NCBI GenBank assembly: GCA_964035545.1
Contig: OZ037772.1
Coordinates: 9,293,150 to 9,357,149 of the forward strand
Source: Bugula neritina
Taxonomy: Eukaryota; Animalia; Bryozoa
Direction: 5' to 3'
DNA: 64,000 nucleotides
The notes below the pieces were generated by a model. The model had not been told where the DNA came from. It did not search any database and saw only the letters and a list, made by a program, of their open reading frames with translations. Shown piece by piece: positions 26,501 to 62,600 of this stretch; the stretch's first letter is position 1; each line of letters begins with the position of its first letter. The position numbers and the translations under genes were made by a program.

Positions 26501-29500
26501 ACCTCACCCACTTCTCAAGAACCCAGCTGCCCTTTTTATACTACTTCTTCAGGCTTCCCTGGCCACTCAACTTTTCTTGGAGTACTACCACACTTTACTA
26601 ACTGCTGGAATTAGTTATAAAACTTCCCCCTCCCCCCTCCCGTACTTGGGTTACTATCACAGACCGCGGACTTGCACACAGGTGTGCTAACCATTACACA
26701 CCACAACTGCTTGGTTATCGCTACACTACAGAGCAAGAATGTAATGACACACACTATGGTCTTAGCAGGTTCTGCTAATATTGAGAAAAGTTAACTGAAT
26801 TTACAGTAGAAAAATTCTGCAAATGTTTATTTTCATGGTTTTTTTTCTTATTTTAATCTTTAGAAGTTATTTTTTGTTGCATTTCTTATATTCAACTATC
26901 ATATACAATAAAATCCACATTACTATACTCTCATACTGGTTAGAAGTTATGACAAGTTAGTTCAGAGTGATCAGTAATAATTTTTGCAGAAGCTTATTTC
27001 CAACAAAAATTAGAGCAGCATGGAACATTTATAAGTTCAGCTTTGAATATAACTTAGTTCAGCATTGAGCATATCTAAGATCATCATTGAACAGAAATAA
27101 GATCATCATTAAACATATATAATATCACTATTGAGCATAAATAAGATCACCATTAAATATATATAAGTTCACCATTGAACATATATAATATCACTATTGA
27201 ACATAAATAAGATCACTATTAAACATATATAATATCACTATTGAGCATAAATAAGATCACCATTGAAAATATATAAGATCACCATTGAACATAATTTGGC
27301 CCATTGTGATAAATACAAAGAATCAACTTCACAACTCTTTATATCAACATTGATCTAACATACTATTCACTGTGAACAGTACCTGACACTAATTTCTATT
27401 CACTGCTGGTCAATTTAGGGATCCAAAAAACGAGAGGTTTTAGTTGTCAGCTTATGTTCACTCTAACACTAATATTTCTCTCTGTGTAGTTATATAGTAA
27501 CATAACTTAAGTGAAAAGCAAAAAACTGTTCACAAGGAAATACAAATTCTTATTTGGGCTATCTTTGCTTCTTACACACTTACATATAATAATTTTTCTT
27601 ATAATGAACAAAGTTTTAATTCTTTAATAATCATTTTACTATTACTATTATTAGCAGCACCTTGGGAAGAGACAACATATATCTTCCTCAAGGATCTGAC
27701 TGATACGTAGATGAATCCATTAAAATCTGTACAGAGACTGTATCCACCTTTAAGATCATCACATGTCCAGAATTCAACCAGCTGCTCATTCTCTATTTTT
27801 GCTTTCTGTAAACTACCTCCAGCAACTCCTATCAGACAACCATCTGGCAAAAACTGTAAGCCAGTCGAGTACAACCAATCAGTTCTTTGTGTTTGTTGAG
27901 ATGTGAAGTCATAAATTATCAATTGTTCATCATCTGGATCCTTAACCACAACATATCTGTCAGAGACTGCCATTACTGCGGCTGTATTATTTTTTCTGTT
28001 AAACTGAAACAATTCTTTTCTCTTTTTGATATCACCAGCCAAACACATTTCTACTATGTCTGTGTTATTTACTGCATGCAGTATGAATACATTCTGATGG
28101 TGTTCCACCACCGATGTAACTGTTTTCACATCTGTGCTGCATAAACTCAGCCAATTCCCACCTCTACGGAGGACATATAATCCACCATTTGTACCTACGA
28201 GTAAATCTCCATTTTGTCTATAGCATGCAGACAGACACTGACTAGTTGTCTTATGTTCAGATATGAATGTCAGTGATGATGGAACTGTCACTAGACTCAG
28301 GCCTAGAATTAATGATGCATCTCTTTTATCTGTAATGATGAAATATTATTTATTTTTCCGATGTTGTTGTTTGATTTCCAATTTTTACATTGCTTGAAAA
28401 TATTGCGATGATAATTCATATTATTAAAAAAGTAAAATAACTTATAGCTGAGCAACACCACTTATCAAAATCAATTTATCTGGCATTGGTTGTCCAATTA
28501 ATAATAAGTTTTATACTAACAAAATAATTGCATGACACATATAGTTTAGCTAATATTGCACTAGTAATTGGTGGCATATTACACTTTGAGCATATAAACT
28601 TTAGGGACAAAACTGATTATTTTATTATTATTGTTTATATCCATTCAAGGCGGTGTACATTATTTTATAGTGGTAACACACCTCAAAGAAATTGTAATAC
28701 TCTACTTACATGCCTGGTTTAGAGCTTGAGTTTTACTGATTGTGCATTCATCAAGTTTTATCTTTTGGACTTCCTCTGCGATTCCTTTTTTCTGTTTTAC
28801 TTTCTCAATCACATGACCACTTTGGATCAAATGGTTCAAATCAACTTGTACTTTCTGCAACTTATTTCTATTCAACATCAGGTTGCTGTAACAAATTTCC
28901 ACCTCATTAGTAACTTTTTTCCTGTGACCTATGACCTTTTTCATGAGTTCTTGACTTGTTTCCTTGATTTTCTTTATCTGTTTGAAGTACATCATTATAT
29001 AATATGTTGAAAATTCCCCATTTTTCATTTATATAATATTTCAAAGTGAACATATACCATTCTACTAAAAGTATTTTTTTTAATTTCAAGTTTTAAAACT
29101 GCTCTTAAATGTTTTGGCACAGATATAAGTTTTACAAAAATTCAGGAATTTCGTATCTTGAAATCTTTTAGCTGTTATATCTAAACTGAAAATATTTAAT
29201 TTTAATGCATCAATTGTCTGGTCGAAACCTAATGTTTATGTAGGAATGGTTGTCAGCGTACCCCTTCTTTTCGCAATTTTCGTATTTGCTTTACAAGTTT
29301 TTCACAAGTCTGTTCCTGATCATCCAGTTCTCTCCAAATCCTCTTGTCCAGATCATACATTTCTGTTATCTTTTCTGTTGTAGTCTGAAGTTGAGTCTGT
29401 AGATATGTATTTATCTCATCTTGCAGAGAGGAAAGAGACTTGAAGTTGTGTTGATCTTCATCTACATGGAATATTGAAATAAAAACTAAAATTTTTTTGC

Positions 29501-33116: not shown

Positions 33117-36100
33117 TCATGTTATTATAAAGAAACACAAGTTCTTCTCATTCCAACTAGGTACAGCCATTACTCCATCTCTGATACTTGGTACTCCTGC
33201 AAATCGTGATGGTAGTTTGTCGTGAAAGAGTGTTTGAAGTAACTCACCTGTAAAACATGAAACTTGTTGAATCCACATTTCCAGTTGAACACCATAATAA
33301 ATGTTTGAATGTAAATAAATATTATGATAACATGCTGTATTTATATAATTAAATGATATATACTCAAAAAGTGACAAATTATGCTCATGCAAATTAAAAA
33401 CTTGTTTATAGTTACACATTTTTCTTAAGATGAACAAAATTTTAATATCTGCAATAATCATAAGCATGCAATGTACTTTTACAAGTATACCAATATTATT
33501 AACAGCACCTTGAGAAGAGACAACAAATATCTTCTTTGAGAATCTGGCTGCTATGTAGATGAGTCCATTAAAATCTGTACAGAGACTTTCTCCACCTTCA
33601 ACATCGTTGCATGTCCAGAGTTCAACCAGCTGTTCATTCTCTATTTCATATTTCTGTAATTTACCTTCAACAATTCCTAACAGACAACCATCTGGTAAAA
33701 ACTGTAAGCCAGTTGCGTACAACAAATTAGTTCTCTCTGTTTGTTGAGATGTGAAATCATAAATAATCAACTGGTTAGTCTCTGGATTCCCCACCACAAC
33801 ATATCTGTCAGAGACTGCCATTACTGCTGCTGTGTTACATTTTTTAGGAAACTGAAAGAGCTTTTTTCTCTTTGTGATGTCATCAGCCAAGCACATCTCT
33901 ACCTTCCATGCACCTGGCGTTGCATGTAGTATGAAAACATTCGGATAATGTTCTACCACTGATGTAACTGACTTCACATCTGTGCTGCATGGATTCAGCC
34001 AATACTCACCTCTACGGAGGACAAATACTCCATTACTTGTACCTACTAGTAGATCTCCATTCTGTCTATAGCAAGCAGACATACACTGACTACTTGTCTT
34101 ATGTTCAGATATGAATGTCAGTGAAGATGGAACTGTCACCAGACTCACACCTAGCGAAGGTGCATCTTTTTTATCTGTATAATAGAATAAAATATATTAT
34201 TTATTATTCTAGTGCTGTTATTTAAATTTAAAATTCTTACGTTGCTTGAAAACACAGTGCTACTTTATATAATTATCCAAGTAAAAAAATCATAGCTTAA
34301 CAATTCACAAATATTATTAGAGTAAAGTTATCTGGCATTAGATGTGCTAATATTTATAATGTTTAAAGAGGGTTTTGACAGCTATAGATGCTATCAGCAA
34401 CAGAATAGTTCCACCTACATGCATAATTCAGCTAAGATTGCATTAATACATGTTTTCACAATAAATTTTCAACAAGTAAACTTCAGGAACAAAACTGGTG
34501 ATTTGAAATCTGATTTTTATTTATAAGTAGCCTAAATAGATGATGATATTTGACTTACAAGTCTGACATAGAGCTTGGGGTTTACTGATTGCATATGGAT
34601 CAAATTCTATTTTTCTCAGTTCCTCTGTAATTTCTTTTCTCTGCTTCACTTTCTCAGTCACATGACGATTTTGAATCAAATGATTCAACTTGATTTGAAC
34701 CTTCTGCAACTCATTTCCCTTTATCATCAGGTTGTTGTAGCAAGCTTCTACCTCATTGGTCACTTTTTTCTTGTGACTTATGACCTTTTTCATGAGTTCT
34801 TGACTTTCTTCTTTAACTTTCTTTATCTGTTTGAAGCACAATAGTACATATTAAGTGGAGAATTCCTCATTGATTTTGTTCTTCAAAATTTTTGTAAACC
34901 AAATGCGTAATTTATTACTTGAAGTGTCTTTTAATTTCTAAACTTTTAAAACTGTTTATGAATGTTTTGGCAAAAACTTTTCTTAAGGAACATCCCGGAA
35001 GTTGGCAAGACAAAACTATTTAAACTTCGTCTCTAAAAAAATAATGATTAGAATCTAATTATAAGTTAGGAAATCAATAACTACATTTTTCCTGCTAAAG
35101 AATGATTATGAACTCACCCTTTCTTTCCGCAACTTGCGAATCTGCTTTACAAGTTTTTCACATGTCTGTTCCTGGTCATCCAGTTCTCTCCATATCTTCT
35201 TGTCCAGATCATATACTTCATTTATCTTTTCTGTTGTAGTATTTAGCTGAGTCTGTAGACATGATTTTATCTCCTTTTGCAGAGAGGAAAGAGACTTGAA
35301 GTTGTGTTGATCTTCCTCTATACACAAAGCAATAATATTGCCCTTACACTTTTTCTTGAAAGTTCAATGCAGTCTATCTTAATTTATAGTAAACAAACAC
35401 CGAAATATTTGCTCTATATATTTTGTAGCTATATAATTTGAATATAATCAATTGTTTTAATAAATGTAGACTATACTATAATATTGTAGTGAATTTTGCC
35501 AGTTCACTATATTATGTGTGGGTCAACTTAAACAAAGCCACTACACCAGGTTGCTTACGCTAAAATAAGTTTATTATTTACACGAATACAAGAAGGTTTA
35601 TTTACTGCTAACATAAATAGAAACGATTACATAATTAGTGAGCTTTAATACACAACTACTCTAAATGAAGTCCCAAGCTGCTCTGCCGGCTAGCTACTCA
35701 ACGCACTGCAACTACGAGTAGCTAGCTCCACCTGCTATCAATTAGTGTGTCCGTCCTGGTTGGTGGTTACTAGTGGTGCCACTGCTGTCCATAGCTACAG
35801 GTCGATGCAGTCGAACTGTACAATATAATGTACAGTATAGAGTGGACCTTTTCGATTAATACTAATATGATTGCACCACTAAAATCTATCACACTCTCCT
35901 CACCTATCGAAAAGTACTCTCTATAATTAATATTTACATGACAATGACACACAAGATAACGGTTGAAACTAACATAGGGTTTTACAAAATTAGGGGTACA
36001 CACTAGAACAAGAGAAAAATATATACAGTACAAAATAGTATAAGTAGAATAAAACAAGTCTTTACTCCGTAGTCGTAACACCTATTTACATTAATTAGTC

Positions 36101-39100
36101 TAACGAAAGTGGGGGGGGGGGTGTGTGTGTGTGTGTGTGGCCGCACCTCTATCACTTCTTCGCCAGTCGTCTCTCTAGTCGAGTCTGCAACTTAGCCAGC
36201 TCAGTGGCCGCTCGCTTCTGTTCCTTACTGAGGCGAGCCATACGCCGCTGCACTTTCCTAATGTCAGTTAGTAGGGACTGGTCAGGGTCGCTGTCATCTC
36301 GGGGTGGGTTGCTAACACCCTTTCTCTTCTTGCGAGTGTGTCGGGGTACATAGGAGATCGTCGTTGTTGGGGGGTGTGAGTCATCAGCTACGGTGCGTCC
36401 AGCACGGGTTACAATAACACGTAGGGGTTGAGTAGCTACGTCAGAGGTGTGTGTTGTCGTCGTCTCAGTGGGTTGGGGGTCTGCATCAGAGTCACTCTCT
36501 ACGGTGGGTCGGGTAGCGGGAAAGTGGTCTAGAAGAGTCTGTCGTCGGTCTGGGTCGGTCACGTGAGGTAGTATTACGTCTCTGAACTCGGTGTAGGAGT
36601 CCGCGTCAACTTCATATAAGTGTCCTATGTAGCAGTCTTGAGTTCTCTGATGTCGTAGTATGGTGTCCCTGCAGAAATGGTGGACTCCACAGGGACAGAA
36701 AGTCACAGTGAAATGTTGGGGGACATGTATTTTAAGTCTTTTGGTAGTGGATAGTGTTCGTCTGCACTCAGTACATTGTCTGTTATCGTCTGACCATACC
36801 AGTGCCTGAATCAGTGTACGAGTCCGTCGAGTCGTCCAGTTAGTCCGTTGGAGTAGTGCTTGTGGCAGTGCTAAAGTATTGTCATTGGTTACAGTCAAGT
36901 CAGGTATGTCCAGTTGCATCGCAGTATGTCGGTCGGTGTTTGTCGGGGAGTCCGTCAGTGTTGACAGGTGTATGTCGGACAGCATGTCTACCCCTGCCTC
37001 TGACATGCTGTCCCAGTTGGTCGTTGGTGTGTCGAGTAACGCCTGTATCTCGTCGGATACAGGCCCAGTCTCACCTGCAATAGAGTATTTAAATTCATGT
37101 ATTATCTGAATCACACTCTATGCGTGGGACTCCCGTTCCAAACGATACTGATAATTGAGTCTCACAGTCTGTCACTCACTGATCGTGTAATCAGCTGAGT
37201 CGACCGTCCCACTCTAACTACCAAATATTGTCTGATGTCAGGAGTTTCAACTTTATCATTATGACAAAGTGAGACTGCTGTCGCTACCAGAGTAAATTCT
37301 AATTAATTATTATAGAATTTCTAGTAGACTTACCCCCCAAAACAGTTGCTGCATTAGACATAATGTTGCTGCTGTTTTCTTAGGGCTCGTAGATAGCCAA
37401 ATTGTTTACTGCAAAAGACGTGCTGCCTGTTTGCTGGTTGTAATTGAAAAGAGCGCTCACAGCTAGAGTGGTTATGTAACACCCTATACGCTGTTGAGTT
37501 GGCTACGCTCTGCTAACCCCCGGCTGACCTATTCAATCCGCCACTGGGTCGCATGTTATCAATTACCTCGCTCCCCCAGACTTCTTTGTGAATGTCGACA
37601 TGTTACAGAATACTGGGCATGTCGACCAAGTCACACAAGAAGTCTCTTAAATAAGATGGTGGCGCCCTGGTACGTTGGCTACGGTCAAACGGTACCGGGG
37701 AGTTTGCTGCGACTGGCGACTCTTCCACTACGAGTGGTGTCGCCAGTACGGGGGGGCCCACCAGTACGGGTGGTCCTCCCCCAGCTGCCTCTTCCTCATG
37801 ATTTTGAGGAATTTCCATCTCATCCGGGACGATGGGCCTGTCGACCGGCTCCACAGGTGATGGGGCCGGCTCTGACAGGTCTTTTGGCGTGTCGGCCTCC
37901 TCCTCCTGGGGTGGAGGAGGCTGGGGCTGGTCGGGCGGCGCATCAGCCGCCCCGTCCTGGTCTGGCAGTATCTCCTCAATCTCTCGATACGCCATGCCTC
38001 GCCCCCTCATAGGAGGGCGTCTAGCAGGCTCTAAGAGAGGAGGTGCTTGACCTGCCGCATCAGGACTCGCCCAGTGAGGTTTTAGCCGTGCCTCGTTCTG
38101 GATCGACACTTGTCCAGACCGTTCCACTTTATAGGTGTGATTTGGCATTACCTCAATTACGCAGTAGGGACCTACGAAATTTGGCTGCAACTTGGCCGCC
38201 TGTCCGCGCCGTCGGCGATGACTGGTCATCCAGACCCAGTCTCCCACCTTGTATAAGGGGGGGTCGTCAGCGTCACCACTTCTGACCTGCCACTGCTGCT
38301 CACATAGCACCTCGTGAGCCGTCCCCATGCGTTTTACGAGCTTGTCCACGTAATCGTGGACATTGCTCTCGGAAGTCGGAACATGATAGGCTACGTGCTC
38401 AGGAACCCTGGTTTCTCTCCCCAGCATGAGAAAATTAGGGGTCTCCAGTGTACTGGAGTGAGGGGTACTACGGTACGCTCGCATGATCTGCGGCAACACC
38501 AAGTCCCGCTCTTCCTGGCTCCTACCGATAAGCAGGCTTCTCAAAGAGTCCCCTAGCATTCGGTTGTTCCGCTCCACAACCCCGTTCCCTTGCGGGTGAT
38601 ACGGGGTCGTCCAACTCTGGTTTACCCCCCACACTCTACAGAGATCGCTCATAAGTTGCGACTGAAACTGGGCGCCTTGATCAGAGTGTATCTGCTCCGG
38701 CAAGCCGAAATAGCAGAACACATGCTGGTCCAAGGCTCTGGCCACCGAGGGGGCCGATGCATCTGGAATAGCCAGTGCATCAGCCCACCGCGTGAAATGG
38801 TCAGTTAATACCAGTATCCAGTTATTACCTCTCGCTGTTGTGGGCATGGGGCCTACCAGATCGACAGCAACTACCTGCCACGGCCGACCGGCATGGAGGC
38901 GACGCCTCCCTGCGGTCTCAGTGGGGCGGCCATGCTTGCTAGCTTGGCACACCTCGCACTTCCGCACCCGGAGTCGGACATCCCGGGTCATACCGGGCCA
39001 AAACCACTGGAGTTGAAGACACCTAGTCACCCGGCTAGCTCCTGCGTGAGCTTGCTTGTGGGTGTCCCAGATCAACTCCCGCCTCAGAGCGAACGGACAG

Positions 39101-42100
39101 ACTACCCTCTCTCGTTCACTGTGATTGGTGCCGGCTGCCAACGTGATCATTAGCAGCCCATCGCTGTTGAACCTGAGGGAGTCCCAGCGGTCACAGAAGT
39201 ACTTAAACTCAGCACTCTTCACTCGCTGTTCGGCCTCACTCGGCCGCCGTCCCTCCTTCTTGGCCCGGAATAGGTCAGCTACCACTCCTGGTAGCGTAGC
39301 CTGGAGCCGACATAGCTCCCTGACGTTCCTGAGCAACGTGGGGTTTGCGTGAAGGTTGTTAACAGCTTTGTTAGGAGATTCGGACAGGAGTTGCCCTTTT
39401 TCCCAGCTGTACACACCCGCTTTCCCCAACTGCGCTTCAACGTCCGAGCGAGGGGGTCCACCGTCCCTGCGCTCAATATTTTGGCACTGCTTAAACCCAT
39501 CTGCCTGGCGGCAGCTGAGTCCATCGGCATTACCGTGTTTCTTACCGGGTCGATGTTCGATCCGATAAGAAAACTCTGCCAGGATCTCTAGCCAGCGCGC
39601 CACTTGGCTTGATGGTTCCGCCCGTCGACACAGCCATATCAAAGACGCATGATCCGTCCGAAGCCGGAATGTACGCCCATATAGATATGGTCTAAAGTGT
39701 TTGACCGCCTTGACTACTGCCAAGAGTTCCCTCCTGGTTGTACAGTAGTTCTTCTCAGGCGCCGACAGGGCCTTGCTATAGTAAGCCACCACCACCTCGC
39801 GACCATCTTGGACCTGCGATAGCACAGCCCCCACATTATGGTTACTGGCATCAGTATCCAAAATGTACTCCTTCGCAGGGTCAGGATACGCCAAGATGGG
39901 TGCTTCCACCAGGCGATCCTTCAGGTGGTCAAATTCCCTCTGCTTGGCCTGCGTCCACTGCCATCGCACCCCCTTTGCTGTCAGCCGATTTAACGGCTGT
40001 GCAATTCCGGCGAAGTCTGGTATGTACTGACGATAGTACCCTACCAGCCCCAGGAACGCCCGCAATTCAGAGAGGTCGACAGGAACGGCCCAGTCCCTCA
40101 CAGCCCGTACCTTCTCGGGGTCGGTGGCGACCCCGTCTCGACCAACTACATGGCCCAGGTACTTAACCTCGCGTTGCAGTAATGCACACTTCGAGGGTTT
40201 GAGCTTCAGGCCCGCAGCTCGAAGCCTGTCAAACACCTCCCTGAGTTGACTGACATGTGTGTCGAAGTTGGGGGAGATGACAATGACATCATCGAGATAG
40301 ATGAGCAAGGTCTTCCAGTGCAGCCCACTCAGGACCTGCTCCATGAGTCGCTGGAAGGTGGCCGGTGCGGACGTAAGTCCGAATGGCAACACCTTCCATT
40401 TCCAGAGCCCATCCCGCGTTATAAACGTGACCTTGTCCTGTGCTTCAGGACTCATGGGCACCTGCCAATACCCGCTTAGCAAGTCCAACGTGCTGAAGAA
40501 CTTGCTACCAGCTAAGGCATCGAGCGACTCATCGATCCTAGGGAGAGGGTAAGCGTCCTGGATGGTCACGCTGTTCAGCCTGCGATAGTCAACGCAAAAC
40601 CTCCAGCTACCATCCTTTTTCCGAACCAGGACGACTGGAGAACTCCAGGCCCCATGGCCTGGCTCAATCAGGTCCCGGTTCAGAAGGTCTTGCACCTGAC
40701 GGCTCACTTCTCTCTCCTTCTCAGGACCTAACCGGCGGGTCGGCTGCCAAATGGGCGCCGTCCCCGCCGCCAGGGGTATCTCATGACAGACAGTCTTAGT
40801 CAGACCCATGTCATGGTCGCCGCAACTAAACACGTCCTTGTACTCAGAGAGTAGCTGCGCCATCACCAGGCGTTCCCGCTTGCTCTCACAGCCATCAGAG
40901 GCATCCTCGTACAACTCTGCTACGTGTTCAGGCACCGGCCTCCTGCCGTCTCTAGTGGGTACTCCACGGGCGGCGTCCGCTGTCTCCAGCGCGGGCCCTA
41001 CATCCTCCTCCTGTACGGAGTGGAACTTCCCCACTAGAGACCCAGCCGGCAATTCTACCGCCTCTGTGAAAGGATTTACGCACTGGACCAGGAACTCCCC
41101 CCGCTCATTCAGCCTATTCAGACTGTTAGCAAGCTGGACGCCCCCCAATGCACCTTCCACCACTTCGAGCTCGGAGATTTCCCTACAGTTCACTCTGCAG
41201 CAAACTGTAGCCCGGGAGCGCCCAGGTACAGTACAGCACTGTACCACCTGCACTCCCCCCACCAAGAGTCGGCCAAATCGGTCGACACAGGCCAGCTCAC
41301 GCCCGGCCATCACTACTGCCGACTTGCTAAAGTTGATGTAGCACCTGTGTCGCTTCAGAAATGGCATGCCCAAGATGGCATCCTCCTTGAGTTGACTGAC
41401 GATGAAGGTCTCACTGATCGTCTGATCACAGACTCTACCAGTCAACTGGATTACCCCATAGAAAGGAATACACGACCCGTCCGCCAACGTGCCGTGCTCC
41501 CCTTCATATGGTTCTAGGCTAGCCCTGTCCCTGGCACTGAGAGTGTCGAATAGACGCCGACTCAGTAGAGTTGTGGTGCACCCAGTATCCAACAGGAATG
41601 TGACAGCTTTGCCAGCAAGTTTGCCGGGGAGGAAATAGCTGCTTCCATATGGCTGAGCGCTCACTGAGCGGTTTGTCTCTTGAGGCGACACCTCGTGTGC
41701 ATGGAGTTGCGGATGCACCTGTGCTTTTCGGTTGCGAGGGGGTCGTCGACGTTGCATGGGCAGGCAGGTTACGTCTCGGTCTCGCTCACACACGGGCGGC
41801 CGAGTGAATTCTCGGACTGATGCTCGTGTGGGCAACCGAGGAAAATCCCTGTTGTGCTCCCACTCGTCGTTCACTCCCTCATTAAGCAAACCTTCAAAGC
41901 GGTTTTTGAGTGCCCAAGCCAGAGGTTTTGGTGGGCCTTGCGGCCTACTTCCTCTCCTTGGGGCTTGCCACTCTGGCGAAGGCGGCCTCCTCACCCGGTG
42001 GGGTTTGAACCTTGGCCTCTGCCTTGGGGGGTTAAACTGGGGCCCACGGTAGGCGGAAGTTACCGTGGGCCGTCGCTGTTTAACCGCCTCTCACTGCCGC

Positions 42101-44334
42101 GGGGGCAACTTCGTATGAAGTGCCCACCACTACCACAGCCCCAGCATATGGGGCCGCGCCTTTCGTCAACAGCTACCGTCAACAGCGTTCGACTGCGGTA
42201 GCATGCTCTCGCAGGTTGATCTTAGGATTTCTCCTAAGACTCTGCAGTTGCACGCGAGCATCTCGAGCGGTTAATCCAAACCGGGCTCGTAGTGCTTCAA
42301 ATATGTCACAGACATTCTGGCTTATCCCATAGGGTTTAGCCGGCCCTGTCAGACATAACCGCAGCTGGATCAGAGTAACCCTATTCGGCCATCCGCAGAT
42401 GCCCGCCACATCACTAAACTCAGTGATGAATTGCTCCACAGAAGATGGGAGCCCGCAAGTGGTACCTGTCCATAGGCAGCGCTGGGTCGCCTATGTGATC
42501 CTCCTCTATTGCTGCTGGCTCCTGTCTAGGCGCGTCGACTTCGTCGGCCATCTTGCTCCCTGGCTAGGAGCATTTGTATTAAGTGGAATCCCACCGCTGC
42601 CACCACTGTAGTGAATTTTGCCAGTTCACTATATTATGTGTGGGTCAACTTAAACAAAGCCACTACACCAGGTTGTTTACGCTAAAATAAGTTTATTATT
42701 TACACGAATACAAGAAGGTTTATTTACTGCTAACATGAATAGAAACGATTACATAATTAGTGAGCTTTAATACACAACTACTCTAAATGTAGTCCCAAGC
42801 TGCTCTGTCGGCTAGCTACTCAGCGCACTGCAACTACAAGTAGCTAGTTCCACCTGCTATGAATTAGTGTGCCCGTCCTGATTGGTGGTTACTAGTGGTG
42901 CCACTGCTGTCCATAGCTACAGGTCGATGCAGTCGAACTGTACAATATAATGTACAGTATAGAGTGGACCTTTTCGATTAATACTAATATGATTGCACCA
43001 CTAAAATCTATCACAATATATTATTTGAATATTATTTTTATTTCTCCATAATAATTTGAAGGAATAATATTTAACCATACCTGTACAGTCTGTGCCATGA
43101 ACATCACATTCATTGCATATCAATCTGTCACATTTCTTACAAGCTTTGATTAGAACCTCTTCATGTTGTTCACACACTGGTTTAGTATAAATAGCTGGTG
43201 ATTTCTTGTACACTTCAATGTCTATTTCCATATGAGATTCTTTGTAGAGCGCTTTGTGAAACTGAAAGAATATATTAAACCGTTGTATTTGTGTATATTG
43301 GCGGAAAATTCAATACAACACAATTTAGTAAAAAGGTGACTAGTTTAAAAAAGGTTGACGGGTAGTGTGTAAAAGAATTAAATACTGGGAGAATTACTTT
43401 TCATATTTCATATATCAATTGAATTAACAGTTTAGTATAATTGACTGGTGCTTGGTTGTACACCTCTTATATATCTATTTTGTCATGAAAGTCTCTGTAG
43501 AGAGTTGTGTGTGTTAAAATATGATGAACAATTGTTATATGCTCTTGGCAAGGATGAATTGTTCATTTACGTTCAACTCTTTAAAAGCGTGTATATTTTA
43601 TGCAAATTCATGATGGCTATAGTTATCATAAATTTGTATCAAAACTATACATGTAAAACATGCAGTGACATACAAAGCTTTGCCCTCCATTATATTTAAA
43701 AATTATTACCTTTTGATGGTCAGTACAGAATTTATCTCCACATGTAATACAAAAGCAAATAGCTATTTGACCTTGACATTCATAAGCTGTACAATACAAT
43801 GTCTCCAGGTCAGACTTGCCATCTTCTGTTTCAACTTTTTGCATGTCTTCAAAGTTGAGGGTTTCATGTACTTCCCTGTATAATAAACTGTATTCAGATT
43901 ATCCTCGAAGAACCTTGAGTATCTTTGGATAGAAAATCAGTTTAAGCACTTTTAAAGATGGGCAAAAAAATTCCTTGGCATTGCATAATTTTGTAAAACA
44001 TACTCAGAAAAACTTTAAGAAAATAAAGCTTTTCAACTGCTGCTTGATAAAAAAAATTTCTTGTAATACAAATATTCATTGGTAGTTAACCAAGTGTTGT
44101 AGGTGTATAGAAACCATCAACTATCTATAATATAAATCAAATAGAACAAACTAATTTTCTATTTACTCACCCACATGTAGGGCAGGTCACAGACCCATGT
44201 TGGTTGTAGTATCCTTCAATACAACTCAAACAGAATACATGCTGACAAGGCAGCTCTCTTGGATCTATCATAGACTCTGTTCTGGATGCACAGAAACCAC
44301 ATTCATAGTCTGAGGGTAGATGTTGGGCAGCCAT
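33117..44334 (-). CDS. TRIM-like gene D (full architecture; LTR retrotransposon in intron 3)
   Basis: Exons 44334-44171, 43875-43710, 43261-43081, 35317-35118, 34826-34559, 34174-33509, 33247-33117. Confidence 0.85.
35485..35893 (-). repeat. 3' LTR of element 1
   Basis: Direct repeat of 42607-43015, ~10 substitutions by eye. Confidence 0.95.
36152..37361 (-). CDS. Element 1 accessory ORF3: two-exon C2H2/C2HC zinc-finger + basic + coiled-coil protein
   Basis: Exon 37361-37334 (MSNAATVLG-G, GTAAGT donor) joins in frame to TTGCAG|37074-36152. Motifs: CTEC-x12-HVPQH, CPCG...HQRTQDC, RKKRK, C-terminal heptads. Confidence 0.8.
37603..42084 (-). CDS. pol: Element 1 Pol polyprotein (protease, RT, RNase H, integrase), entered by -1 frameshift
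   Basis: LLDTG protease, YLDD RT, DAS RNase H, H-H-C-C and D-D-E integrase motifs; the frame is open from the slippery site at 42084. Confidence 0.95.
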   Translation of the reverse strand, partial: VKQRRPTVTSAYRGPQFNPPRQRPRFKPHRVRRPPSPEWQAPRRGSRPQGPPKPLAWALKNRFEGLLNEGVNDEWEHNRDFPRLPTRASVREFTRPPVCERDRDVTCLPMQRRRPPRNRKAQVHPQLHAHEVSPQETNRSVSAQPYGSSYFLPGKLAGKAVTFLLDTGCTTTLLSRRLFDTLSARDRASLEPYEGEHGTLADGSCIPFYGVIQLTGRVCDQTISETFIVSQLKEDAILGMPFLKRHRCYINFSKSAVVMAGRELACVDRFGRLLVGGVQVVQCCTVPGRSRATVCCRVNCREISELEVVEGALGGVQLANSLNRLNERGEFLVQCVNPFTEAVELPAGSLVGKFHSVQEEDVGPALETADAARGVPTRDGRRPVPEHVAELYEDASDGCESKRERLVMAQLLSEYKDVFSCGDHDMGLTKTVCHEIPLAAGTAPIWQPTRRLGPEKEREVSRQVQDLLNRDLIEPGHGAWSSPVVLVRKKDGSWRFCVDYRRLNSVTIQDAYPLPRIDESLDALAGSKFFSTLDLLSGYWQVPMSPEAQDKVTFITRDGLWKWKVLPFGLTSAPATFQRLMEQVLSGLHWKTLLIYLDDVIVISPNFDTHVSQLREVFDRLRAAGLKLKPSKCALLQREVKYLGHVVGRDGVATDPEKVRAVRDWAVPVDLSELRAFLGLVGYYRQYIPDFAGIAQPLNRLTAKGVRWQWTQAKQREFDHLKDRLVEAPILAYPDPAKEYILDTDASNHNVGAVLSQVQDGREVVVAYYSKALSAPEKNYCTTRRELLAVVKAVKHFRPYLYGRTFRLRTDHASLIWLCRRAEPSSQVARWLEILAEFSYRIEHRPGKKHGNADGLSCRQADGFKQCQNIERRDGGPPRSDVEAQLGKAGVYSWEKGQLLSESPNKAVNNLHANPTLLRNVRELCRLQATLPGVVADLFRAKKEGRRPSEAEQRVKSAEFKYFCDRWDSLRFNSDGLLMITLAAGTNHSERERVVCPFALRRELIWDTHKQAHAGASRVTRCLQLQWFWPGMTRDVRLRVRKCEVCQASKHGRPTETAGRRRLHAGRPWQVVAVDLVGPMPTTARGNNWILVLTDHFTRWADALAIPDASAPSVARALDQHVFCYFGLPEQIHSDQGAQFQSQLMSDLCRVWGVNQSWTTPYHPQGNGVVERNNRMLGDSLRSLLIGRSQEERDLVLPQIMRAYRSTPHSSTLETPNFLMLGRETRVPEHVAYHVPTSESNVHDYVDKLVKRMGTAHEVLCEQQWQVRSGDADDPPLYKVGDWVWMTSHRRRRGQAAKLQPNFVGPYCVIEVMPNHTYKVERSGQVSIQNEARLKPHWASPDAAGQAPPLLEPARRPPMRGRGMAYREIEEILPDQDGAADAPPDQPQPPPPQEEEADTPKDLSEPAPSPVEPVDRPIVPDEMEIPQNHEEEAAGGGPPVLVGPPVLATPLVVEESPVAANSPVPFDRSQRTRAPPSYLRDFLCDLVDMPSIL
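42041..42084 (-). promoter_or_regulatory. -1 ribosomal frameshift signal, element 1
   Basis: G_TTA_AAC, 6-nt spacer, perfect 11-bp stem GGCCCACGGTA/TACCGTGGGCC; pol is in the -1 frame relative to gag. Confidence 0.85.
42060..42551 (-). pseudogene. gag: Element 1 gag remnant
   Basis: MADEVDAP... start, capsid-like VEQFITEF...LRARFG, zinc knuckle CWGCGSGGHFIRSC. Only 492 nt long, with a frame break near 42440 and stops near 42180. Confidence 0.8.
42586..42605 (-). promoter_or_regulatory. Primer-binding site complementary to the tRNA-Leu 3' end
   Basis: TGGTGGCAGCGGTGGGATTC, one base from the 5' LTR. Confidence 0.9.
42607..43015 (-). repeat. 5' LTR of element 1
   Basis: Direct repeat of 35485-35893, adjacent to the PBS. 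Confidence 0.95.
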
Positions 44335-56170: not shown

Positions 56171-58285
56171 TTTGTTCAGTTTATGAATTGGAAAGATTCA
56201 AAGCCTATATGACATTTAAGTTTAATTACTTTTCATAACAGATGGCCAGTGGATGGTTGTATCTGTGCCTCAAGACCAAAACGAGTCTTGACAAGGTTTA
56301 TATGTGTTTGATTTGATATAACTTCATTAATAATTTATTTATACTTTGTTACCCTTTGTTAATCATATGTTAACCTTTTGTTAAACTGTAAAAAAATATA
56401 AGATGTATGCAACAGAACCATCACTAAAGTAACTTTAAAAAACGCATAAAAAATCTAACTATTGCAACATTTCAAAGTAATTATTATTATTATACTATAA
56501 AAAAGATGAGATTTACATTAGCAGTAAAATATAGCCTACATGACAATAATTAATTTACACAGACCTCCGTTCTCACGCTATGAGATGCAGATATAATCTA
56601 TATCATGCTTCAAACTGACTATATATAGGCTATTATATTCTTTTACAAATCAGTGTCAAAAAACTATGTGTTGATGACTGTAGTATTAACCTTTAACTGA
56701 TTTGCTTGTATAAGTAAGCAGCGTGATGCCATTATGTGATGCCATTACGTGATGCCATTACGTAAAGCTATAGGCACAAAAATGATGCAATGATGATGCA
56801 ACACACAAGTATGATATCACTGTCAACAGAAAATAAACAAGTATTTTACTATTGAGTTAGAAGATAATGAAAGCCAAAATATGGTAAAGGAGGTTAATAA
56901 TATGGTGAAATTTACTGTAATGAAAATTATAGTATTTTCTAAATGCTTTAAGTAGCCAGCAATCCACTACAATGGTTACTAAATTGCCTACCATAACCAA
57001 AACAACAGAATGAAAAAGAAAATGCTCACTTGGCGAGCCTTGCATTTTAAAGTTGAAACTTAATCAAAGAAAAAAACATGAAAAAGAGTATATCTATCAA
57101 ATTAGGTACCATGCCTTTAAAGTGTTTATGATAATTTACAGAGGTATTAGCTGACGTCTAGCTAAGTTGTCTAGATAATAAATAGTAAATATTACAAAGC
57201 ATAAATGAGTTATAATACCTGTTTAGTAGCTATATTATAGCAGCCACAGTGTGTGGTATCAACTGGTACATTGAGGAATATTATGTTTCGTAACTAGTAG
57301 CAATTGATTACCAATCATGTAATGAAATATTGTCATTGTAAACTCAGTTCCATTAAATGCTATCTCAAAATGTTTATGACTCTTTATGCAACTCACAGTA
57401 CAACAAGTATGGAAATAATCATGTTTGCATGGTGCTCATGCTAAAAGGGGAAGTCCCCAATTTGTTAGCTAGAACAATCACGTGAAATGAATAAAGTTAA
57501 TGAAATGTAAGAATATAGCATTGGTGTATTGAATTGTAGCACAATACAAAATATTGATTACAGCTAAACAATATATTTAGGTTTATTCTGTGTTCACCTG
57601 CATATAAATAACTTTAAATATACAGCAGGTAATAGTAAACTAGGCATAAGCTGTACACATTTATTTATCTTTTAGCACAATGCTATATTGTTATAATTTT
57701 CAGATTTAGGGTTGATATGCTGTCCAGAGAGTCTATTTATTTGCTATAGAACTGCACCAGGATAAGTCGAGTGAACGAGTATATTTTACACACAATTATA
57801 CATTATAAAAACGATACATTACATCCAGACAAGTTATACATCTAATCTATTTGACACTCTAGCTTCGACTGACTTAGCAGCGGGAAACTATAATTGCTGC
57901 TAACTATCCAATACGCTAATTGGCTATCCATTGTTCCGGGTCAATTACGCGACCCTACATGTTGTGCTGCTGGTAGTTCCACGAACCACCACACCGCCCC
58001 CACCAGCAGAAAGCCCTCTTTCTGATATATATAAAAAAAAACATTCATTAGTAACCGCATACATCAGTGGACAAAAATAATACATAATATACAGGAAGAG
58101 ACATAATAATAGGCAGAGTCATTATAACAATCCGTTACCTACAATTGACCAGCTATAGACGAGGAATACCGGCTAGCTGTGGTATTAGACAGGGAATAAC
58201 CTGTCAAGCAGTCAAGCATTTACACGAGGTCCTAGGTTTCCCCAAGAGAATGAAGTTGCGGATTATTCCGACAGCAGAACTAGAG

Positions 58286-59356
58286 TCATTGTTGGGCACG
58301 CCGGTGCTTGGCTTGGCATGTACGCAGTTTCGGTTTCATACGGCATACGGATCCCTTTAGCTGGAAGAGTCCTGTTGTAGTATTAAGTAGATCTGGTGCC
58401 AACTGGGTGAATTCTTCTTGTAATCGCAGGAGGCGTTCTTCTACTGTGGCCAGGCGGACTGGGTCTGGGGACGGTGTCCGTCTGCGGCGCAAGGGGGGAC
58501 TGGGGGACCTGGTTCGTCTCTTCGTCGGGGTAGGGGAGATCTCTCCTTCTTCTGGATATGTAAACTCCTCGGGGGTGTATGTAATCTGAGGGCGGTCAGA
58601 CACCAACGGGGATTGTTGGCGGGCGTTGTCTAATACACGTTGGAACCCCGAGGTCAGAACGGCCAACAGCATTGCCTTCTTCACCAGGGGTCGTATAAGT
58701 GTGAGGAACTCCGGGTATAGCTTAGCGTCGACCACGTAGTTTTCTCCAGGGAAACAGCCCGTCGCTCGATGTCTGGTGACGGGGTAGGGATAAACATCAT
58801 TGTACCCGCAGGGGCAGAATGTTAGTAGGAGATGAGCATTGACGTGTAGTTTCAGGGAGCGGTGGGAGGCGCATTCTTCACCACAAATCTGGCATCTCGT
58901 CCGTCCTCTGGACCCCCAGGCCGTTTCTATTTCTTCCTCTGTTTGTGGAGACACCCACCGCCAACGGCGGCGTAGTGGCTCAGGCCGGTCACCACTAGCA
59001 TACTCCTCCGGATGCGGAGCGGGAAGTGTTCTATCCCGTACCCTGGTTGTAGCGGGTCGAGTGTAATCTGAAAAAGTTTCAACAGTGTTAATACAGTACA
59101 CTGCCGTGTTGTCAGCTTGAATAGCTTGGCAACTCCTAATTCAGTTACCTCGTAGAGATTTGTGGTAGTGAATAGTCAGATAGAACACGTATTGCAATGA
59201 GATTATAAAAATCTCTAAGTCAAACTGAGTTCTTACTCGGTATTTCACTAACCTATCTCCAGCTCGATTGACTCAGTGAGTCGGAGCTGAGTGATGCAAT
59301 CTAGTTTCGTATTAAGATATAGTTAACTCACCCCACGATCTGTTGTCGTAAGACAT
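58286..59356 (-). CDS. Element 2 accessory ORF3: two-exon zinc-finger + RS/SP-basic + coiled-coil protein
   Basis: Exon 59356-59332 (MSYDNRSW-D, GTGAGT donor) joins in frame to TTTTTCAG|59067-58286. Motifs: CQIC-x12-HVNAH, CPCG...HRATGC, RRTRSPSPPLRRRRTPSP, C-terminal heptads. Confidence 0.8.
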
Positions 59357-59625
59357 ACTGAATGTGTGAAATGGTTTGAACTACTGCTTAGAAACACGTC
59401 TACTCCTGACTGCATCAGCGTATGAAAAGATCGAGCAACGTGGTTGGGGTGCGTGATTAAGACTTTGTGCACCCGGCGGATGAATTTTGTTTCTATTTCC
59501 GCCGATACAAAAGTTGATTTTTCCGTGGTGCTGACAACTCCCACATTTGCTCGATACTTTTCTCATACGGTTTTCCCCTAGACTTTCATACACGCCGCTT
59601 GTAACGCAGTCGCATATGAAGTCCT

Positions 59626-62600
59626 TCAAGTATGCGGGGGTTGCCTCGTACGCTGTCCCCTTTCTAGGGGGGGTGGCACGCTTGCCGGTTCGTTAGTAGG
59701 GGCCTCTAATGGCGTCTCTACTTCACCGTTAGCGGTCACCTCTTCTTGTTCTCCAGATGGAGCCCCTCCCTCTGTGGGGGTTTGCACTTCCGGAACCGGT
59801 TCGGTTTCTGGAAGTGATGGAATTAAACTTGGCGGTGGCGGACACGCTTCTGTTGACAAAAGCTGCCGCTCCTCTCTCACCAAGTTTTCTTCCCGCGGTA
59901 TGACCACTTCGTATTCAGGTCCATGCCGCCGTCGCCCGCGCGTTGTTGTCTGCCTCCTGGGCTCTAACAACGGGGGGGCTTCCCCCACTCCGTCGGGGCT
60001 AGCCCAATACGGTTTCAAGCGAGACTCATTCTGGATAGACACCTGTCCTGAGCGCTCAATCTTGTACGTATGATTTGGCATAGCCTCGACGACCACGTAG
60101 GGCCCTACGAACTTAGGCTTCAGTTTATCAGCCTGTCCGCGACGCCTACGGTAATTGACCATCCACACCTTATCTCCCATTTGATAGAGAGGTGGTTCAT
60201 CGGAATCTTCGTGCCGCACCTTCCACTGCTGTTGGCGCAGTATATCGTGTGCGGCCTTCATCCGTTCCACTAGTTCACTGGCATACTCGTGGACCGAGTT
60301 GTCTTGCTCTGGAACGTGATAGGTGAGATGGTCAGGGACACGAGTCTCTCTCCCGAGCATCAAGAGGTTTGGGGTCTCACCAGTACTGGTGTGTGGGGTG
60401 CTACGGTATGTACGCATGACTTGCGGCAACACCGTATCCCATTCCTCTTGACCTCGTCCAAGGAGGAGACTCCGGAGTGCATCACCTAGCATCCGGTTGT
60501 TGCGCTCCACCACCCCGTTACCTTGAGGGTGGTAGGGGGTGGTCCTGCTCTGATTTACTCCCCAGAGGTGGCAAAGGTCGCTCATCAGTTGAGACTGGAA
60601 TTGAGCGCCTTGATCAGAGTGTATCTGTTCGGGGAGCCCAAAATAACAGAATACATGTTGGTCTAGTGCCCTGGCCACTGTTGGGGCTGATGCATCTGGG
60701 ATAGCCAGAGCATCCGCCCACCTAGTAAAGTGGTCGGTTAGTACTAGGATCCAATTATTGCCTCTGGGGGTCAGGGGCATGGGTCCGACCAGGTCTACAG
60801 CGACTACTTGCCAGGGCCTACCAGCATATAGCCTCCGCCGTCCTGCTTCACCAGGGGGGCGGCTATGCTTACTGGCCTGGCAGATCTCACACTGTTTGAC
60901 TCTGAGCCGGACGTCACGCTCCATTTGTGGCCAATACCACCGGAGTCGTAATTTGGACATCACTCTCTTGACCCCTGCGTGGGCCTGTTTGTGAGTATCC
61001 CAAATCAACTCACGGCGGATGGCCGTGGGGCAGACTACCCTCTTCCTTTCCGGGTGTCTGCCGCTGGCAGCTAGAGAGATGGTTAGTAACCCATCCTGCC
61101 CGATCCGCAGCGAGTCCCAACGCTGACAGTATAGCCGGAACTCGGCGCATCCCTGTCGTATGCGTTCCTCGCTGGGTCGTCGCCCTTCCCTTTTGGCCCG
61201 GTATATGTCTGCCACGACTCCAGGCAGCTCTTCTTGGAGCTTCTTCAGCTCTCGAACATTACCGGCCAGTACAGGGTTGGCGCGGAGGTTTTGTACACCC
61301 TCCGGGGATTCATCAACTCCTTGCCTGAGTTGACCCTGGTCCCAGTCAAACGGTGCTCCGTGGTGAGCCAGCGTCTCCAACTCGCATCGCGGGGGACCTC
61401 CATCCCTCCTCTCGATGTTGAGACACTGTTTGCAACCTCCGTCAGGTCGACGACTCAACCCATCCGCATTGCTGTGTCTCTTGCCCGGTCGATGTTCGAT
61501 CCGGTATGAGAATTCAGCTAGGATTTCGAGCCACCGGGCGACCTGACTAGAGGGCTCTGCTCTCTTGCACAACCAGATCAGCGAGGCATGATCCGTACGC
61601 AGCCGGAACTTCCTGCCATATAGGTATGGTCTGAAGTGCTTCACTGACTTGATTACTGCCAGCAGCTCCTTGCGGGTAGTGCAGTAGTTTCGTTCAGTGG
61701 GTGAGAGAGACTTGCTGTAGTAGGCTACTACTACTTCTCGGCCTTCCTGCACTTGCGACAGCACAGCGCCAACATTTTGGTCACTGGCGTCGGTGTCGAG
61801 GATGTACTCCAGAGTGGGGTCTGGGTAGGCCAAGATGGGCGCCGTTAGTAGGCAGCCCTTGAGGCGGTCGAACGCTTCTTGTTCGACTGGGGTCCACTGC
61901 CACGTCACTCCCTTTGCGGTGAGCCGGTTTAACGGCTGTGCTATGCCCGCAAAGTCTGGTATGTATTGTCTGTAATACCCTACCAGCCCCAAGAAAGCCC
62001 GGAGTCCGGTCAAGTCTTGGGGGGTGACCCAGTCTTCTATTGCCCGTACCTTCTCGGGATCCGTTGCCACGCCGTTTCGACCGACAACGTGCCCCAGGTA
62101 CTTAACCTCTGGCTGCAATAGAGCGCACTTAGAAGGCTTGAGCTTAAGACCGGCACCTCGGAGTCTCTCAAAGACCTCCTGCAGACGACTGACATGTGTC
62201 TCGAAGTCTGGGGAGATCACGATGACATCATCGAGGTAGATCAGCAGTGTCTTCCAGTGGAGCCCGCTGAGGACTTGCTTCATCAGCCTCTGGAAGGTGG
62301 CTGGGGCGGAGGTCAACCCGAAAGGCAGCACCTTCCACTTCCACAACCCGTCCCGTGTGATAAACGCCGCTTTCTCTTGGGCGTCGGGACTCAGAGGAAC
62401 TTGCCAATAGCCGCTTAGCAAGTCTAACGTACTGAAGTACTTGCTGCCGGCTAGGGCATCCAATGACTCGTCAATACGAGGTAGAGGGTAGGCGTCCTGT
62501 ATGGTTACGCTATTGAGTTTGCGGTAATCCACACAGAACCGCCAACTGCCGTCTTTCTTCCGGACCAGTACGACTGGCGAGCTCCACGCACTATGGGCGG

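Follow-up and report, generated by a model that had tools for sequence, protein, structure and literature searches.

The stretch examined here (hereafter, the window) comprises 64,000 nt of contig OZ037772.1 of the bryozoan Bugula neritina and contains one complete and one partial long terminal repeat (LTR) retrotransposon of the Ty3/gypsy type (element 1 and element 2, respectively), both read on the reverse strand. Each contains, behind pol, a further gene, here called the accessory gene (copy 1 and copy 2). As judged from the sequences of its intron-bearing and intron-less members, a Ty3/gypsy lineage of bugulid bryozoans has, downstream of pol, a third gene that is expressed from spliced RNA. 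Very probably, this accessory gene is a genuine, spliced, and selected gene of the element. Copy 1 is located in sense orientation between pol (37603-41994) and the 3′ LTR (35485-35893). The features concerned, with their positions in the window, are as follows.

35485-43015, reverse strand: element 1, a whole Ty3/gypsy LTR retrotransposon of 7531 bp (from the LTR pair and flanks)
37603-41994, reverse strand: pol open reading frame (ORF) of element 1, open over 1463 codons (from Pfam)
37362-37602, reverse strand: conserved non-coding spacer from the pol stop to the accessory ATG, 241 nt
37334-37361, reverse strand: accessory exon 1 of copy 1, a 28-nt ATG micro-exon ending G/GTAAGT
37075-37333, reverse strand: intron of copy 1, 259 nt, GTAAGT...TTGCAG, phase 1, 38% GC
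36152-37074, reverse strand: exon 2 of copy 1, 923 nt, intact (two split-codon bases, 306 codons, and a stop)
59332-59356, reverse strand: accessory exon 1 of element 2, 25 nt, ATG...G/GTGAGT
59068-59331, reverse strand: intron of element 2, 264 nt, phase 1, ending TTTTTCAG
58286-59067, reverse strand: accessory exon 2 of element 2, phase 1

The micro-exon of copy 1 encodes M-S-N-A-A-T-V-L-G plus the first base of a glycine codon, and its ATG (37361) is situated 241 nt downstream of the pol stop. When read without splicing, this ATG leads to a stop after 20 codons; the spliced product comprises 316 amino acids and terminates at 36152-36154. The first-pass annotation, made from the sequence of the window, had proposed the micro-exon, a 259-nt intron in phase 1, and an exon 2 of ~306 codons, as well as the same layout in the diverged element 2, and both gene structures were recovered (with a 25-nt exon and a 264-nt intron, again in phase 1, in the latter). 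In the exon-2 frame of copy 1, the first ATG past the acceptor corresponds to residue 23. In that of element 2, the first Met is encountered only downstream of the conserved zinc-finger core (see below), which indicates that the core needs an upstream ATG exon. Exon 2 of the copy-1 lineage begins with a donor-like G-T-G-A-G (37066-37074), which is invariant in seven copies and for which base pairing with C-A-G-T-C-T-C, in the early part of the intron, is predicted.

The 28-nt ATG exon, the G/GTAAGT donor, and a pyrimidine-rich acceptor ending in CAG and followed by GT were present in seven of seven aligned copies of the copy-1 lineage, the length of exon 1 being invariant despite indels elsewhere in the alignment. 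The copy-2 lineage (copy 2 and the relative at locus L007) has a 25-nt exon in the same phase. Because it recurs in the seven copies of one lineage and in the other lineage, the layout is beyond chance. The junction 37334/37074 itself, for which the first-pass annotation had looked to transcript data, is given by natural intron-less copies. Nine predicted proteins cross the exon-2 border; seven continue into intron sequence, whereas the N-termini of the other two (P0088 and P0081, from different sub-lineages) consist of the micro-exon peptide fused directly to exon-2 sequence. In the contig encoding P0088 (L015; positions 1-946), the 3′ end of pol and the spacer are followed by the ATG exon, which continues into exon 2 without the intron. 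The 40-mers to the left and right of this junction, compared separately, were found 243-273 nt apart in all seven intron-bearing copies, and the stretch missing from L015 always begins with GTAAGT and ends with CAG; in copy 1, it corresponds to exactly 37333-37075. Intron-less copies with such exact GT...AG boundaries are expected from reverse transcription of spliced, pol-containing RNA. Thus, the proposal of a genuine intron common to diverged lineages is borne out by seven copies, copy 2, L007, and the intron-less relatives. L015 and P0081 also suggest that, from time to time, spliced full-length RNA is copied into DNA and inserted into the genome; the rest of L015 is degenerate and gives way at its end to AT-rich DNA that does not belong to the element.

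In L007 (3430-3770), the frame is open from the donor through the intron-equivalent stretch, with three possible in-frame AG acceptors 35, 41, or 311 nt downstream. A 35-41-nt intron and a 311-nt intron to a better acceptor fit equally well, and the intron may be partly exonized in this copy. Within the spacer of copy 1, a pyrimidine tract (37453-37446) is followed by AG sites at 37435-37434 and 37428-37427, both AGs being present in six of seven copies. At ~37409, an acceptor-like site that the first-pass annotation had taken as a sign of multiple splicing has its AG in only three of seven copies and was therefore rejected as conserved. Among the few non-coding letters common to both deeply diverged lineages are a purine-rich motif just past the pol stop, A-A-G-T-C-T-R-G-G-G-G (37570-37585 and 59590-59605), and a C-T-T-T-T-C tract ~90 nt before the accessory ATG, which could be part of an acceptor for a leader splice.

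The accessory gene is under purifying selection, yet it evolves much faster than pol. Among four intact copies, those comparisons that allowed an estimate of dS gave an overall dN/dS of 0.11-0.16 and a value of 0.07 for the core, the silent sites being near saturation. Neutral evolution was looked for, and the values obtained correspond to a gene that is maintained by selection, as had been assumed. Between copy 1 and copy 2, the accessory protein is 23% identical overall and 34% identical in the core, compared with 68% for pol. Silent sites were also compared along the elements, using positions 36152-37074 and 37075-38600 of copy 1 and the same regions in L001, L009, L011, L013, and L014 (L001, which holds most of a degenerate relative, was used only around the accessory gene and for the outer bounds of its pol matches). 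In every pair, the silent sites of exon 2 were two- to sevenfold more diverged than pol third positions, spacer, and intron, and in 100-nt windows the step in divergence was situated just inside exon 2. This step could stem from constraint on the sequence 5′ of it, from a recombined 3′ module, or from the two together. One-sided G-to-A editing was rejected as the cause of the silent excess in exon 2 because A/G and C/T changes are balanced. CpG depletion was similar everywhere across the compared regions.

Protein searches, alignments, and structure prediction were based on exon 2 alone, and residues are given in exon-2 numbering. The parts of the product encoded by copy 1 are the following (pLDDT, predicted local distance difference test).

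36503-36880, reverse strand: conserved core domain, residues 65-190, two fingers and flanking helices, pLDDT > 90
36320-36334, reverse strand: basic patch RKKRK, residues 247-251, candidate nuclear localization signal
36158-36286, reverse strand: C-terminal amphipathic helix, residues 263-305, with heptad pattern, likely a coiled coil

The first finger (C100/C103/H116/H120) has exactly the spacing of a classical C2H2 finger, C-x2-C-x12-H-x3-H; that of the second (C126-P-C128-G...H141...C147) is CxC-x12-H-x5-C. A YxVDA motif reads Y-E-V-D-A in copy 1 and Y-V-V-D-A in copy 2. Across 78 diverse relatives, C103 was invariant, and C100, H116, H120, C126, C128, H141, V155, and D156 were conserved in at least 90%; C147 was invariant in 24 closer relatives. 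Basic runs equivalent to RKKRK are present in relatives, and the a/d heptad columns of the helix are at least 83% hydrophobic in the 24. From an alignment of the 78 relatives, AlphaFold2 predicted a confident core (68-190) and a single helix (263-305), both with pLDDT > 90, while the N-terminus and the linker were disordered. In the model, the fingers are embedded in a larger fold of ~120 residues with additional helices and a strand. The N-terminus is strongly acidic in the copy-1 lineage, with a conserved D-M-L-S-D motif, and basic in copy 2. A membrane segment or signal peptide was not found in either copy (Kyte-Doolittle 19-residue maxima of 0.74 for copy 1 and 1.51 for copy 2). A loose export-signal pattern matched at a few places in the protein, which says little. 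In this respect, the first-pass annotation was accurate in every part it had named: the C2H2 finger, the CPCG...H...C finger, YxVDA, RKKRK, the C-terminal coiled coil, and the lack of a transmembrane segment.

When the family profile was compared with PDB, only solved C2H2 fingers were matched (best E = 1.4e-6). Copy 1 had no match in Pfam, the finger of copy 2 scored 14 bits, which is under the gathering threshold of 25.2, and weak zf-C2H2 matches were obtained for 12 of the 78 relatives. Foldseek searches against PDB and BFVD yielded nothing with E < 0.26. Neither a described Pfam family, nor a solved structure, nor a paper for this gene was found in the databases and literature searched, and the literature on bryozoan retrotransposons and Bugula genomes included therein gave no description of it. 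Beyond its generic C2H2 finger, the accessory protein family is therefore new with respect to Pfam, PDB, BFVD, and the literature searched, which agrees with its not having been recognized initially. The gene had also been proposed to stand in place of env without being env; a reading as env was rejected on the grounds that there is no Pfam match, no signal peptide or membrane anchor, and no Foldseek match to a fusion-glycoprotein fold.

A search with exon 2 returned 30 close relatives of 50-84% identity, which originated from JGI 3300002729 and 3300003318 (one of them also from Logan SRR4020085) and, in a few cases, from ENA. The JGI scaffolds are tagged AY690838, an accession that occurs in papers on mitochondrial genomes of Bugula and other bryozoans, among them that of Bugula neritina. 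In a search of 1.84 billion representatives, 164 clusters were obtained with E up to 0.001, the common part being residues 65-195. The named members are from cheilostome bryozoans only (Bugula neritina KAF6037488.1 and Watersipora subatra XP_067940963/4), and the known host range comprises Bugula and Watersipora only. Scans of metagenome contigs, by alignment and by single protein, gave pattern matches of which none was confirmed as a relative, and a profile search of a word-indexed protein collection added no named relatives among the matches listed; look-ups of two more clusters yielded no organism names. The accessory gene is element-borne and linked to Gypsy pol, as anticipated: pol was found directly upstream, on the same strand, in eight fetched loci (L001, L002, L007, L008, L009, L011, L013, and L014) and in both copies of the window.

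No pol was found near the gene at L005 and L006 (the Bugula EB796_004208 locus), L010, and L012 (Watersipora). At L005 (1480-2747; the same as L006), the family exon is preceded by an AT-rich exon, to which it is joined across a host-type phase-1 intron. The GC content at third codon positions (GC3) of EB796_004208 is 0.44, which lies between the values for element genes (0.49-0.62) and for a host ORF (0.29) and thus points to a transfer of this Bugula copy from the element to the host. L012 (17900-21000) contains two tandem Watersipora paralogues that are ~41% identical and have no pol within 29 kb; RefSeq fuses both into one model of 644 amino acids, and no convincing ATG micro-exon was seen upstream of them. 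The pol-less paralogues may be co-opted element genes. Their host-like appearance in Bugula and Watersipora indicates that exchange with the host genome has happened, in a direction that we infer; this weakens the first-pass interpretation.

Spacer and intron diverge more slowly than the flanking silent sites, in 15 of 15 pairs of six copies (intron identity 59-94%, spacer 68-94%, and four-fold sites of exon 2 24-69%). Intron mismatch relative to copy 1 (three copies) was 0.06-0.23, which is under that of pol third positions (0.10-0.30), and 3′-UTR mismatch (0.17-0.49) was above it. The RNAalifold consensus contained 154 pairs, with 93% of the cells paired. Two-sided changes occurred in 20 pairs, compared with 10 ± 2.4 in shuffles (0/500) and between one and seven with slid partners. 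The micro-exon plus intron of copy 1 folded with z = −6.95. In the minimum-energy fold of five copies of both lineages, the micro-exon is part of a hairpin whose stem pairs the donor, with paired letters that differ between the lineages; in the copy-1 lineage, the pyrimidine tract and the acceptor are predicted to be paired too, so that the modeled fold pairs both splice sites. Spacer and intron, which adjoin each other, appear to form an RNA module under selection.

LTR retrotransposons usually contain gag and pol, and sometimes env, and regulatory genes expressed from spliced RNA are regarded as a hallmark of complex retroviruses; to our knowledge, Cer1 with its product CERV is the sole exception that has been worked out. 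CERV is made from a spliced RNA of Cer1, a Gypsy element of Caenorhabditis elegans, contains a nuclear localization signal, a zinc finger, and a leucine zipper, and was shown experimentally to be required for the export of unspliced Cer1 RNA (PMC10309623). It comprises 517 amino acids encoded by five exons, its N-terminus is shared with gag, which its gene overlaps, and it contains H, M, and GTPase-like G domains plus a C4-type finger (PMC10309623). Both CERV and the bryozoan protein are extra proteins from spliced RNA of a Gypsy-type element, which for the latter is indicated by the natural intron-less copies. Both combine a candidate basic nuclear localization signal with a Cys-rich zinc finger and a helix of the leucine-zipper kind. 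In either case, the genomic RNA retains working splice sites and needs a route out of the nucleus, and neither protein is known to have relatives outside its own animal group. In contrast to CERV, the bryozoan protein is only ~316 amino acids long and is encoded by two exons located after pol, with an ATG of its own 241 nt past the pol stop. It has a pair of fingers (C2H2 and CCHC) and no G-like domain, the model containing one finger domain and one helix, and Foldseek found no GTPase-like structural match for it. All traceable matches belonged to the bryozoan family, and no nematode protein was named in the searches. The function of CERV was established by experiment, whereas the role of the accessory protein is suggested by its architecture. 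Thus, of the first-pass proposal of a "complex" retrotransposon with a spliced gene, the spliced and selected gene stands; the arrangement is not without precedent, given CERV of Cer1 (PMC10309623).

The regulators of complex retroviruses (Rev/Rex, Tat, Tax, and Tas/Bel1) are small nuclear proteins that are made from spliced RNAs encoded 3′ of pol and have oligomerization and basic nucleic-acid-binding parts. We know of no classical C2H2 finger among them. They are compared here by role only, the present element being of the Metaviridae type and lacking env. The accessory protein contains a basic patch and a likely coiled coil; the intron of its gene is conserved, has a predicted structure, and shows some covariation. 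The RNA target of Rev is intronic and, hence, present only on unspliced RNA (PMC10309623). Env-carrying Ty3/gypsy elements (errantiviruses) likewise have a third ORF, which in those of insects occupies the same position after pol, but the accessory protein differs in having no signal peptide, membrane anchor, or glycoprotein fold. In bryozoan GAG-ENV-POL elements, env precedes pol (PMC13524379). Classical C2H2 proteins (PF00096/PF13894) share the exact spacing of the first finger; in the accessory protein, however, this single canonical finger is followed by the CxC-x12-H-x5-C finger, within a larger fold that lacks a structural match. Ogre elements have an intron in the polyprotein region. 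Other Ty3/gypsy elements of plants have gained further ORFs or domains, such as an m6A-demethylase domain in orchids (PMC9289625). These plant elements resemble the bryozoan ones in that LTR retrotransposons may fix extra coding capacity and even an intron in the genomic RNA, but they belong to another kingdom, the proteins are unrelated, and the Ogre intron is not in an accessory gene.

The mechanism tentatively favored, which is possible rather than probable, is that the accessory protein acts as a nuclear, oligomeric finger protein post-transcriptionally on the RNA of its own element, shifting it from splicing to export. A role as a nuclear regulator is suggested by the domain make-up and by analogy. 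The protein would enter the nucleus, the helix would mediate oligomerization, and the fingers and the basic patch would bind nucleic acid. Its target would be the transcripts of the element itself, in which the intron is present only in the unspliced full-length RNA. This RNA would have to escape splicing and nuclear retention because it serves as genome and as gag-pol message. By binding to the structured spacer-intron module, the protein may favor the unspliced RNA, either via export or via protection from splicing, and the paired splice sites would hold basal splicing low. The outcome would be a feedback loop like that of CERV in Cer1 or of Rev and the Rev response element (RRE) in lentiviruses. 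More speculatively, and somewhat doubtfully, the elements may possess a self-encoded circuit, independent of retroviruses and of Cer1, in which the protein decides between splicing and export and which was later co-opted as a host gene.

Several observations weigh against a regulator that acts on element RNA. The RNA fold was scored on the same seven related sequences from which it was derived; a control segment from pol folded with z = −3.8, no worse than the intron of copy 2 (z = −4.07), and the spacer alone was unexceptional (z = −1.6). A separate recombination history of the 3′ module (exon 2, 3′-UTR, and LTR) could account for part of the slow divergence seen in spacer and intron. Nor is the intron universal, since the relative at L008 has a plain ORF of 479 codons with its own ATG. 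No similarity to CERV, Rev, or any viral protein was seen among the traceable sequence matches or in Foldseek. The C2H2 fingers, the dimerizing helix, and, in the copy-1 lineage, the acidic N-terminus would equally fit a DNA-binding transcription factor.

Accordingly conceived, the accessory protein could be a sequence-specific DNA-binding trans-activator that switches on the LTR of its own element, like Tas/Bel1 or Tax. Each chain would contribute two fingers, the coiled coil would double this number, and the acidic N-terminus would be activating. This reading is almost as likely as the RNA-regulator reading. It would account for the classical spacing of the first finger and for the fact that all matches in PDB are DNA-binding arrays, for the conserved dimerizing helix with the basic patch, and for the strongly acidic N-terminus with D-M-L-S-D. 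Within the element, it is the accessory protein and the LTRs that evolve fast, as expected if they co-evolve, and each LTR contains two perfect inverted repeats with arms of 8 and 11 nt. However, two fingers are few for such a factor, the second of them is atypical (CxC...H...C), and a canonical inter-finger linker is absent. Moreover, the acidic N-terminus is lost in copy 2, and the constraint on the intron is left unexplained. A factor directed at the host, which would steer integration to chromatin or repeats, or blunt host silencing, is unlikely. In its favor, the protein evolves rapidly compared with pol (23-34% versus 68% identity between the two copies), as do proteins that are in conflict with host partners or adapt to them; both copies of the window reside in the same 5.9-kb host tandem array, and pol-less copies have seemingly been taken into host gene models. 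Despite this, a single array with two insertions is not enough to indicate targeting, dN/dS is far below 1 wherever it was measured, without a sign of positive selection, and nothing ties the protein to integrase.

Still less likely is that the gene is a passenger, that is, a host zinc-finger gene captured by one Gypsy lineage and having no role in its life cycle, or that it is the host copies that are functional. Such an origin would be consistent with the pol-less Bugula gene EB796_004208, with its AT-rich upstream exon and host-type phase-1 intron, and with the tandem Watersipora pair that has no pol within 29 kb. But the gene is open and constrained in lineages whose accessory proteins are only 23-34% identical, and its position behind pol is always the same, which argues for an association that is old and selected within the elements; the GC3 of the Bugula copy is element-like and points from element to host. 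Finally, the micro-exon could be fortuitous, with the protein, if any, being made from an internal Met or from another transcript. This is very improbable, despite the fact that an in-frame Met is present 23 codons into exon 2 in the copy-1 lineage, where gene callers start, and that a short G-G-T repeat, present at both borders of the intron, could allow a microhomology deletion that mimics a splice. The latter is unlikely because two independent intron-less copies, from different sub-lineages, have identical GT...AG boundaries. No Met precedes the core in copy 2 or in the lineage of L010, which has 416 nt of AT-rich sequence upstream, and exon 1 is of fixed length in seven copies despite nearby indels. 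The 21 codons ahead of the internal Met are open in every copy compared, and they are constrained in four of the five pairs for which a ratio was obtained (dN/dS 0.004-0.37; 0.85 in the remaining pair).

If the reading of the accessory protein as a regulator of element RNA is correct, the bryozoan elements would represent the rare, retrovirus-like "complex" type of retrotransposon beyond nematodes, as a second, unrelated case from a different animal superphylum. Deeply diverged copies still have the intron, and the elements provide a system for asking how an intron persists in an RNA that is also copied unspliced and how accessory genes originate in retroelements. The pol-less paralogues are a candidate case of gene flow between element and host.

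The remaining features of the two elements are as follows.

42607-43015, reverse strand: 5′ LTR of element 1, 409 nt, TG...CA
35485-35893, reverse strand: 3′ LTR of element 1, 409 nt, with AATAAA motifs and an 11-nt inverted repeat
42585-42606, reverse strand: candidate primer-binding site, abutting the 5′ LTR and containing a TGG motif
41995-42551, reverse strand: gag region with a CCHC knuckle, broken and short for a gag (from the ORF list)
35894-36151, reverse strand: 3′ untranslated stretch of element 1, beginning with (CA)n and a C run and ending in the polypurine tract
59626-63903, reverse strand: pol ORF of element 2, open over 1425 codons (from the ORF list and Pfam)
57697-58285, reverse strand: 3′ untranslated stretch and 3′ LTR of element 2, low end approximate

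Element 1 has the direct LTRs with TG...CA ends and the short target-site duplication of a Ty3/gypsy element, the latter being a 4-bp ATAT at 43016-43019 and 35481-35484. The GC content inside both elements is 50-57%, compared with ~31% in the surrounding host DNA. In pol of both copies, the Pfam domains occur in the Ty3/gypsy order of protease, reverse transcriptase, RNase H, and integrase; the integrase part of element 1 consists of H2C2, core, and SH3-like domains, and then a long Pro/Glu-rich tail. A chromodomain, as in chromoviruses, was not matched by Pfam in either pol. The polypurine tract (35894-35904) adjoins the 3′ LTR. Straight after the accessory stop codon come a (CA)n run and then a C run (36108-36150). 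ARAGORN found no tRNA genes in the 64-kb window or in any fetched locus, and an Rfam scan of the window gave no match.

Both pol and the accessory gene are free of stops and frameshifts in both copies. Three frame changes separate the first ATG of the element 1 gag from the pol frame; a natural gag-pol shift could account for one of these at most. Because gag is broken and the 5′ and 3′ LTRs differ by 10 mismatches over 409 nt, element 1 is an old copy that is probably non-autonomous. Element 2 is partial; pol, the accessory gene, and the 3′ end are present, and the gag region and the 5′ LTR lie past the end of the window. Its low end (57697) was set where homology to the host repeat unit resumes. 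The perfect 11-nt inverted repeat, with arms ~17 nt apart, is found in both LTRs of element 1 (42815-42865 and 35693-35743), and the perfect repeat with 8-nt arms surrounds a TATA-like stretch (42940-42975). These inverted repeats could be protein-binding sites or form a hairpin in the leader RNA.

The host DNA between 20000 and 57700 is a tandem array of ~5.9-kb units that are 80-90% identical, with higher-order duplication at offsets of 18.9 and 22.7 kb, and it is into such units that both Gypsy elements have inserted. Each unit contains a long ORF without a Pfam domain, for example, 33117-34148 (343 codons; 36% GC) beside element 1, which is a member of a large family of "hypothetical proteins" specific to Bugula, with up to 88% identity. 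Patches of 38-41% GC occur at 4-6 kb and 8-10 kb within the first 20,000 nt of the window. Weak matches were obtained to laminin-EGF for the ORF at 3637-4149 and to a beta-propeller for that at 27599-28291; scattered ORFs such as these are probably host exons or other repeats.

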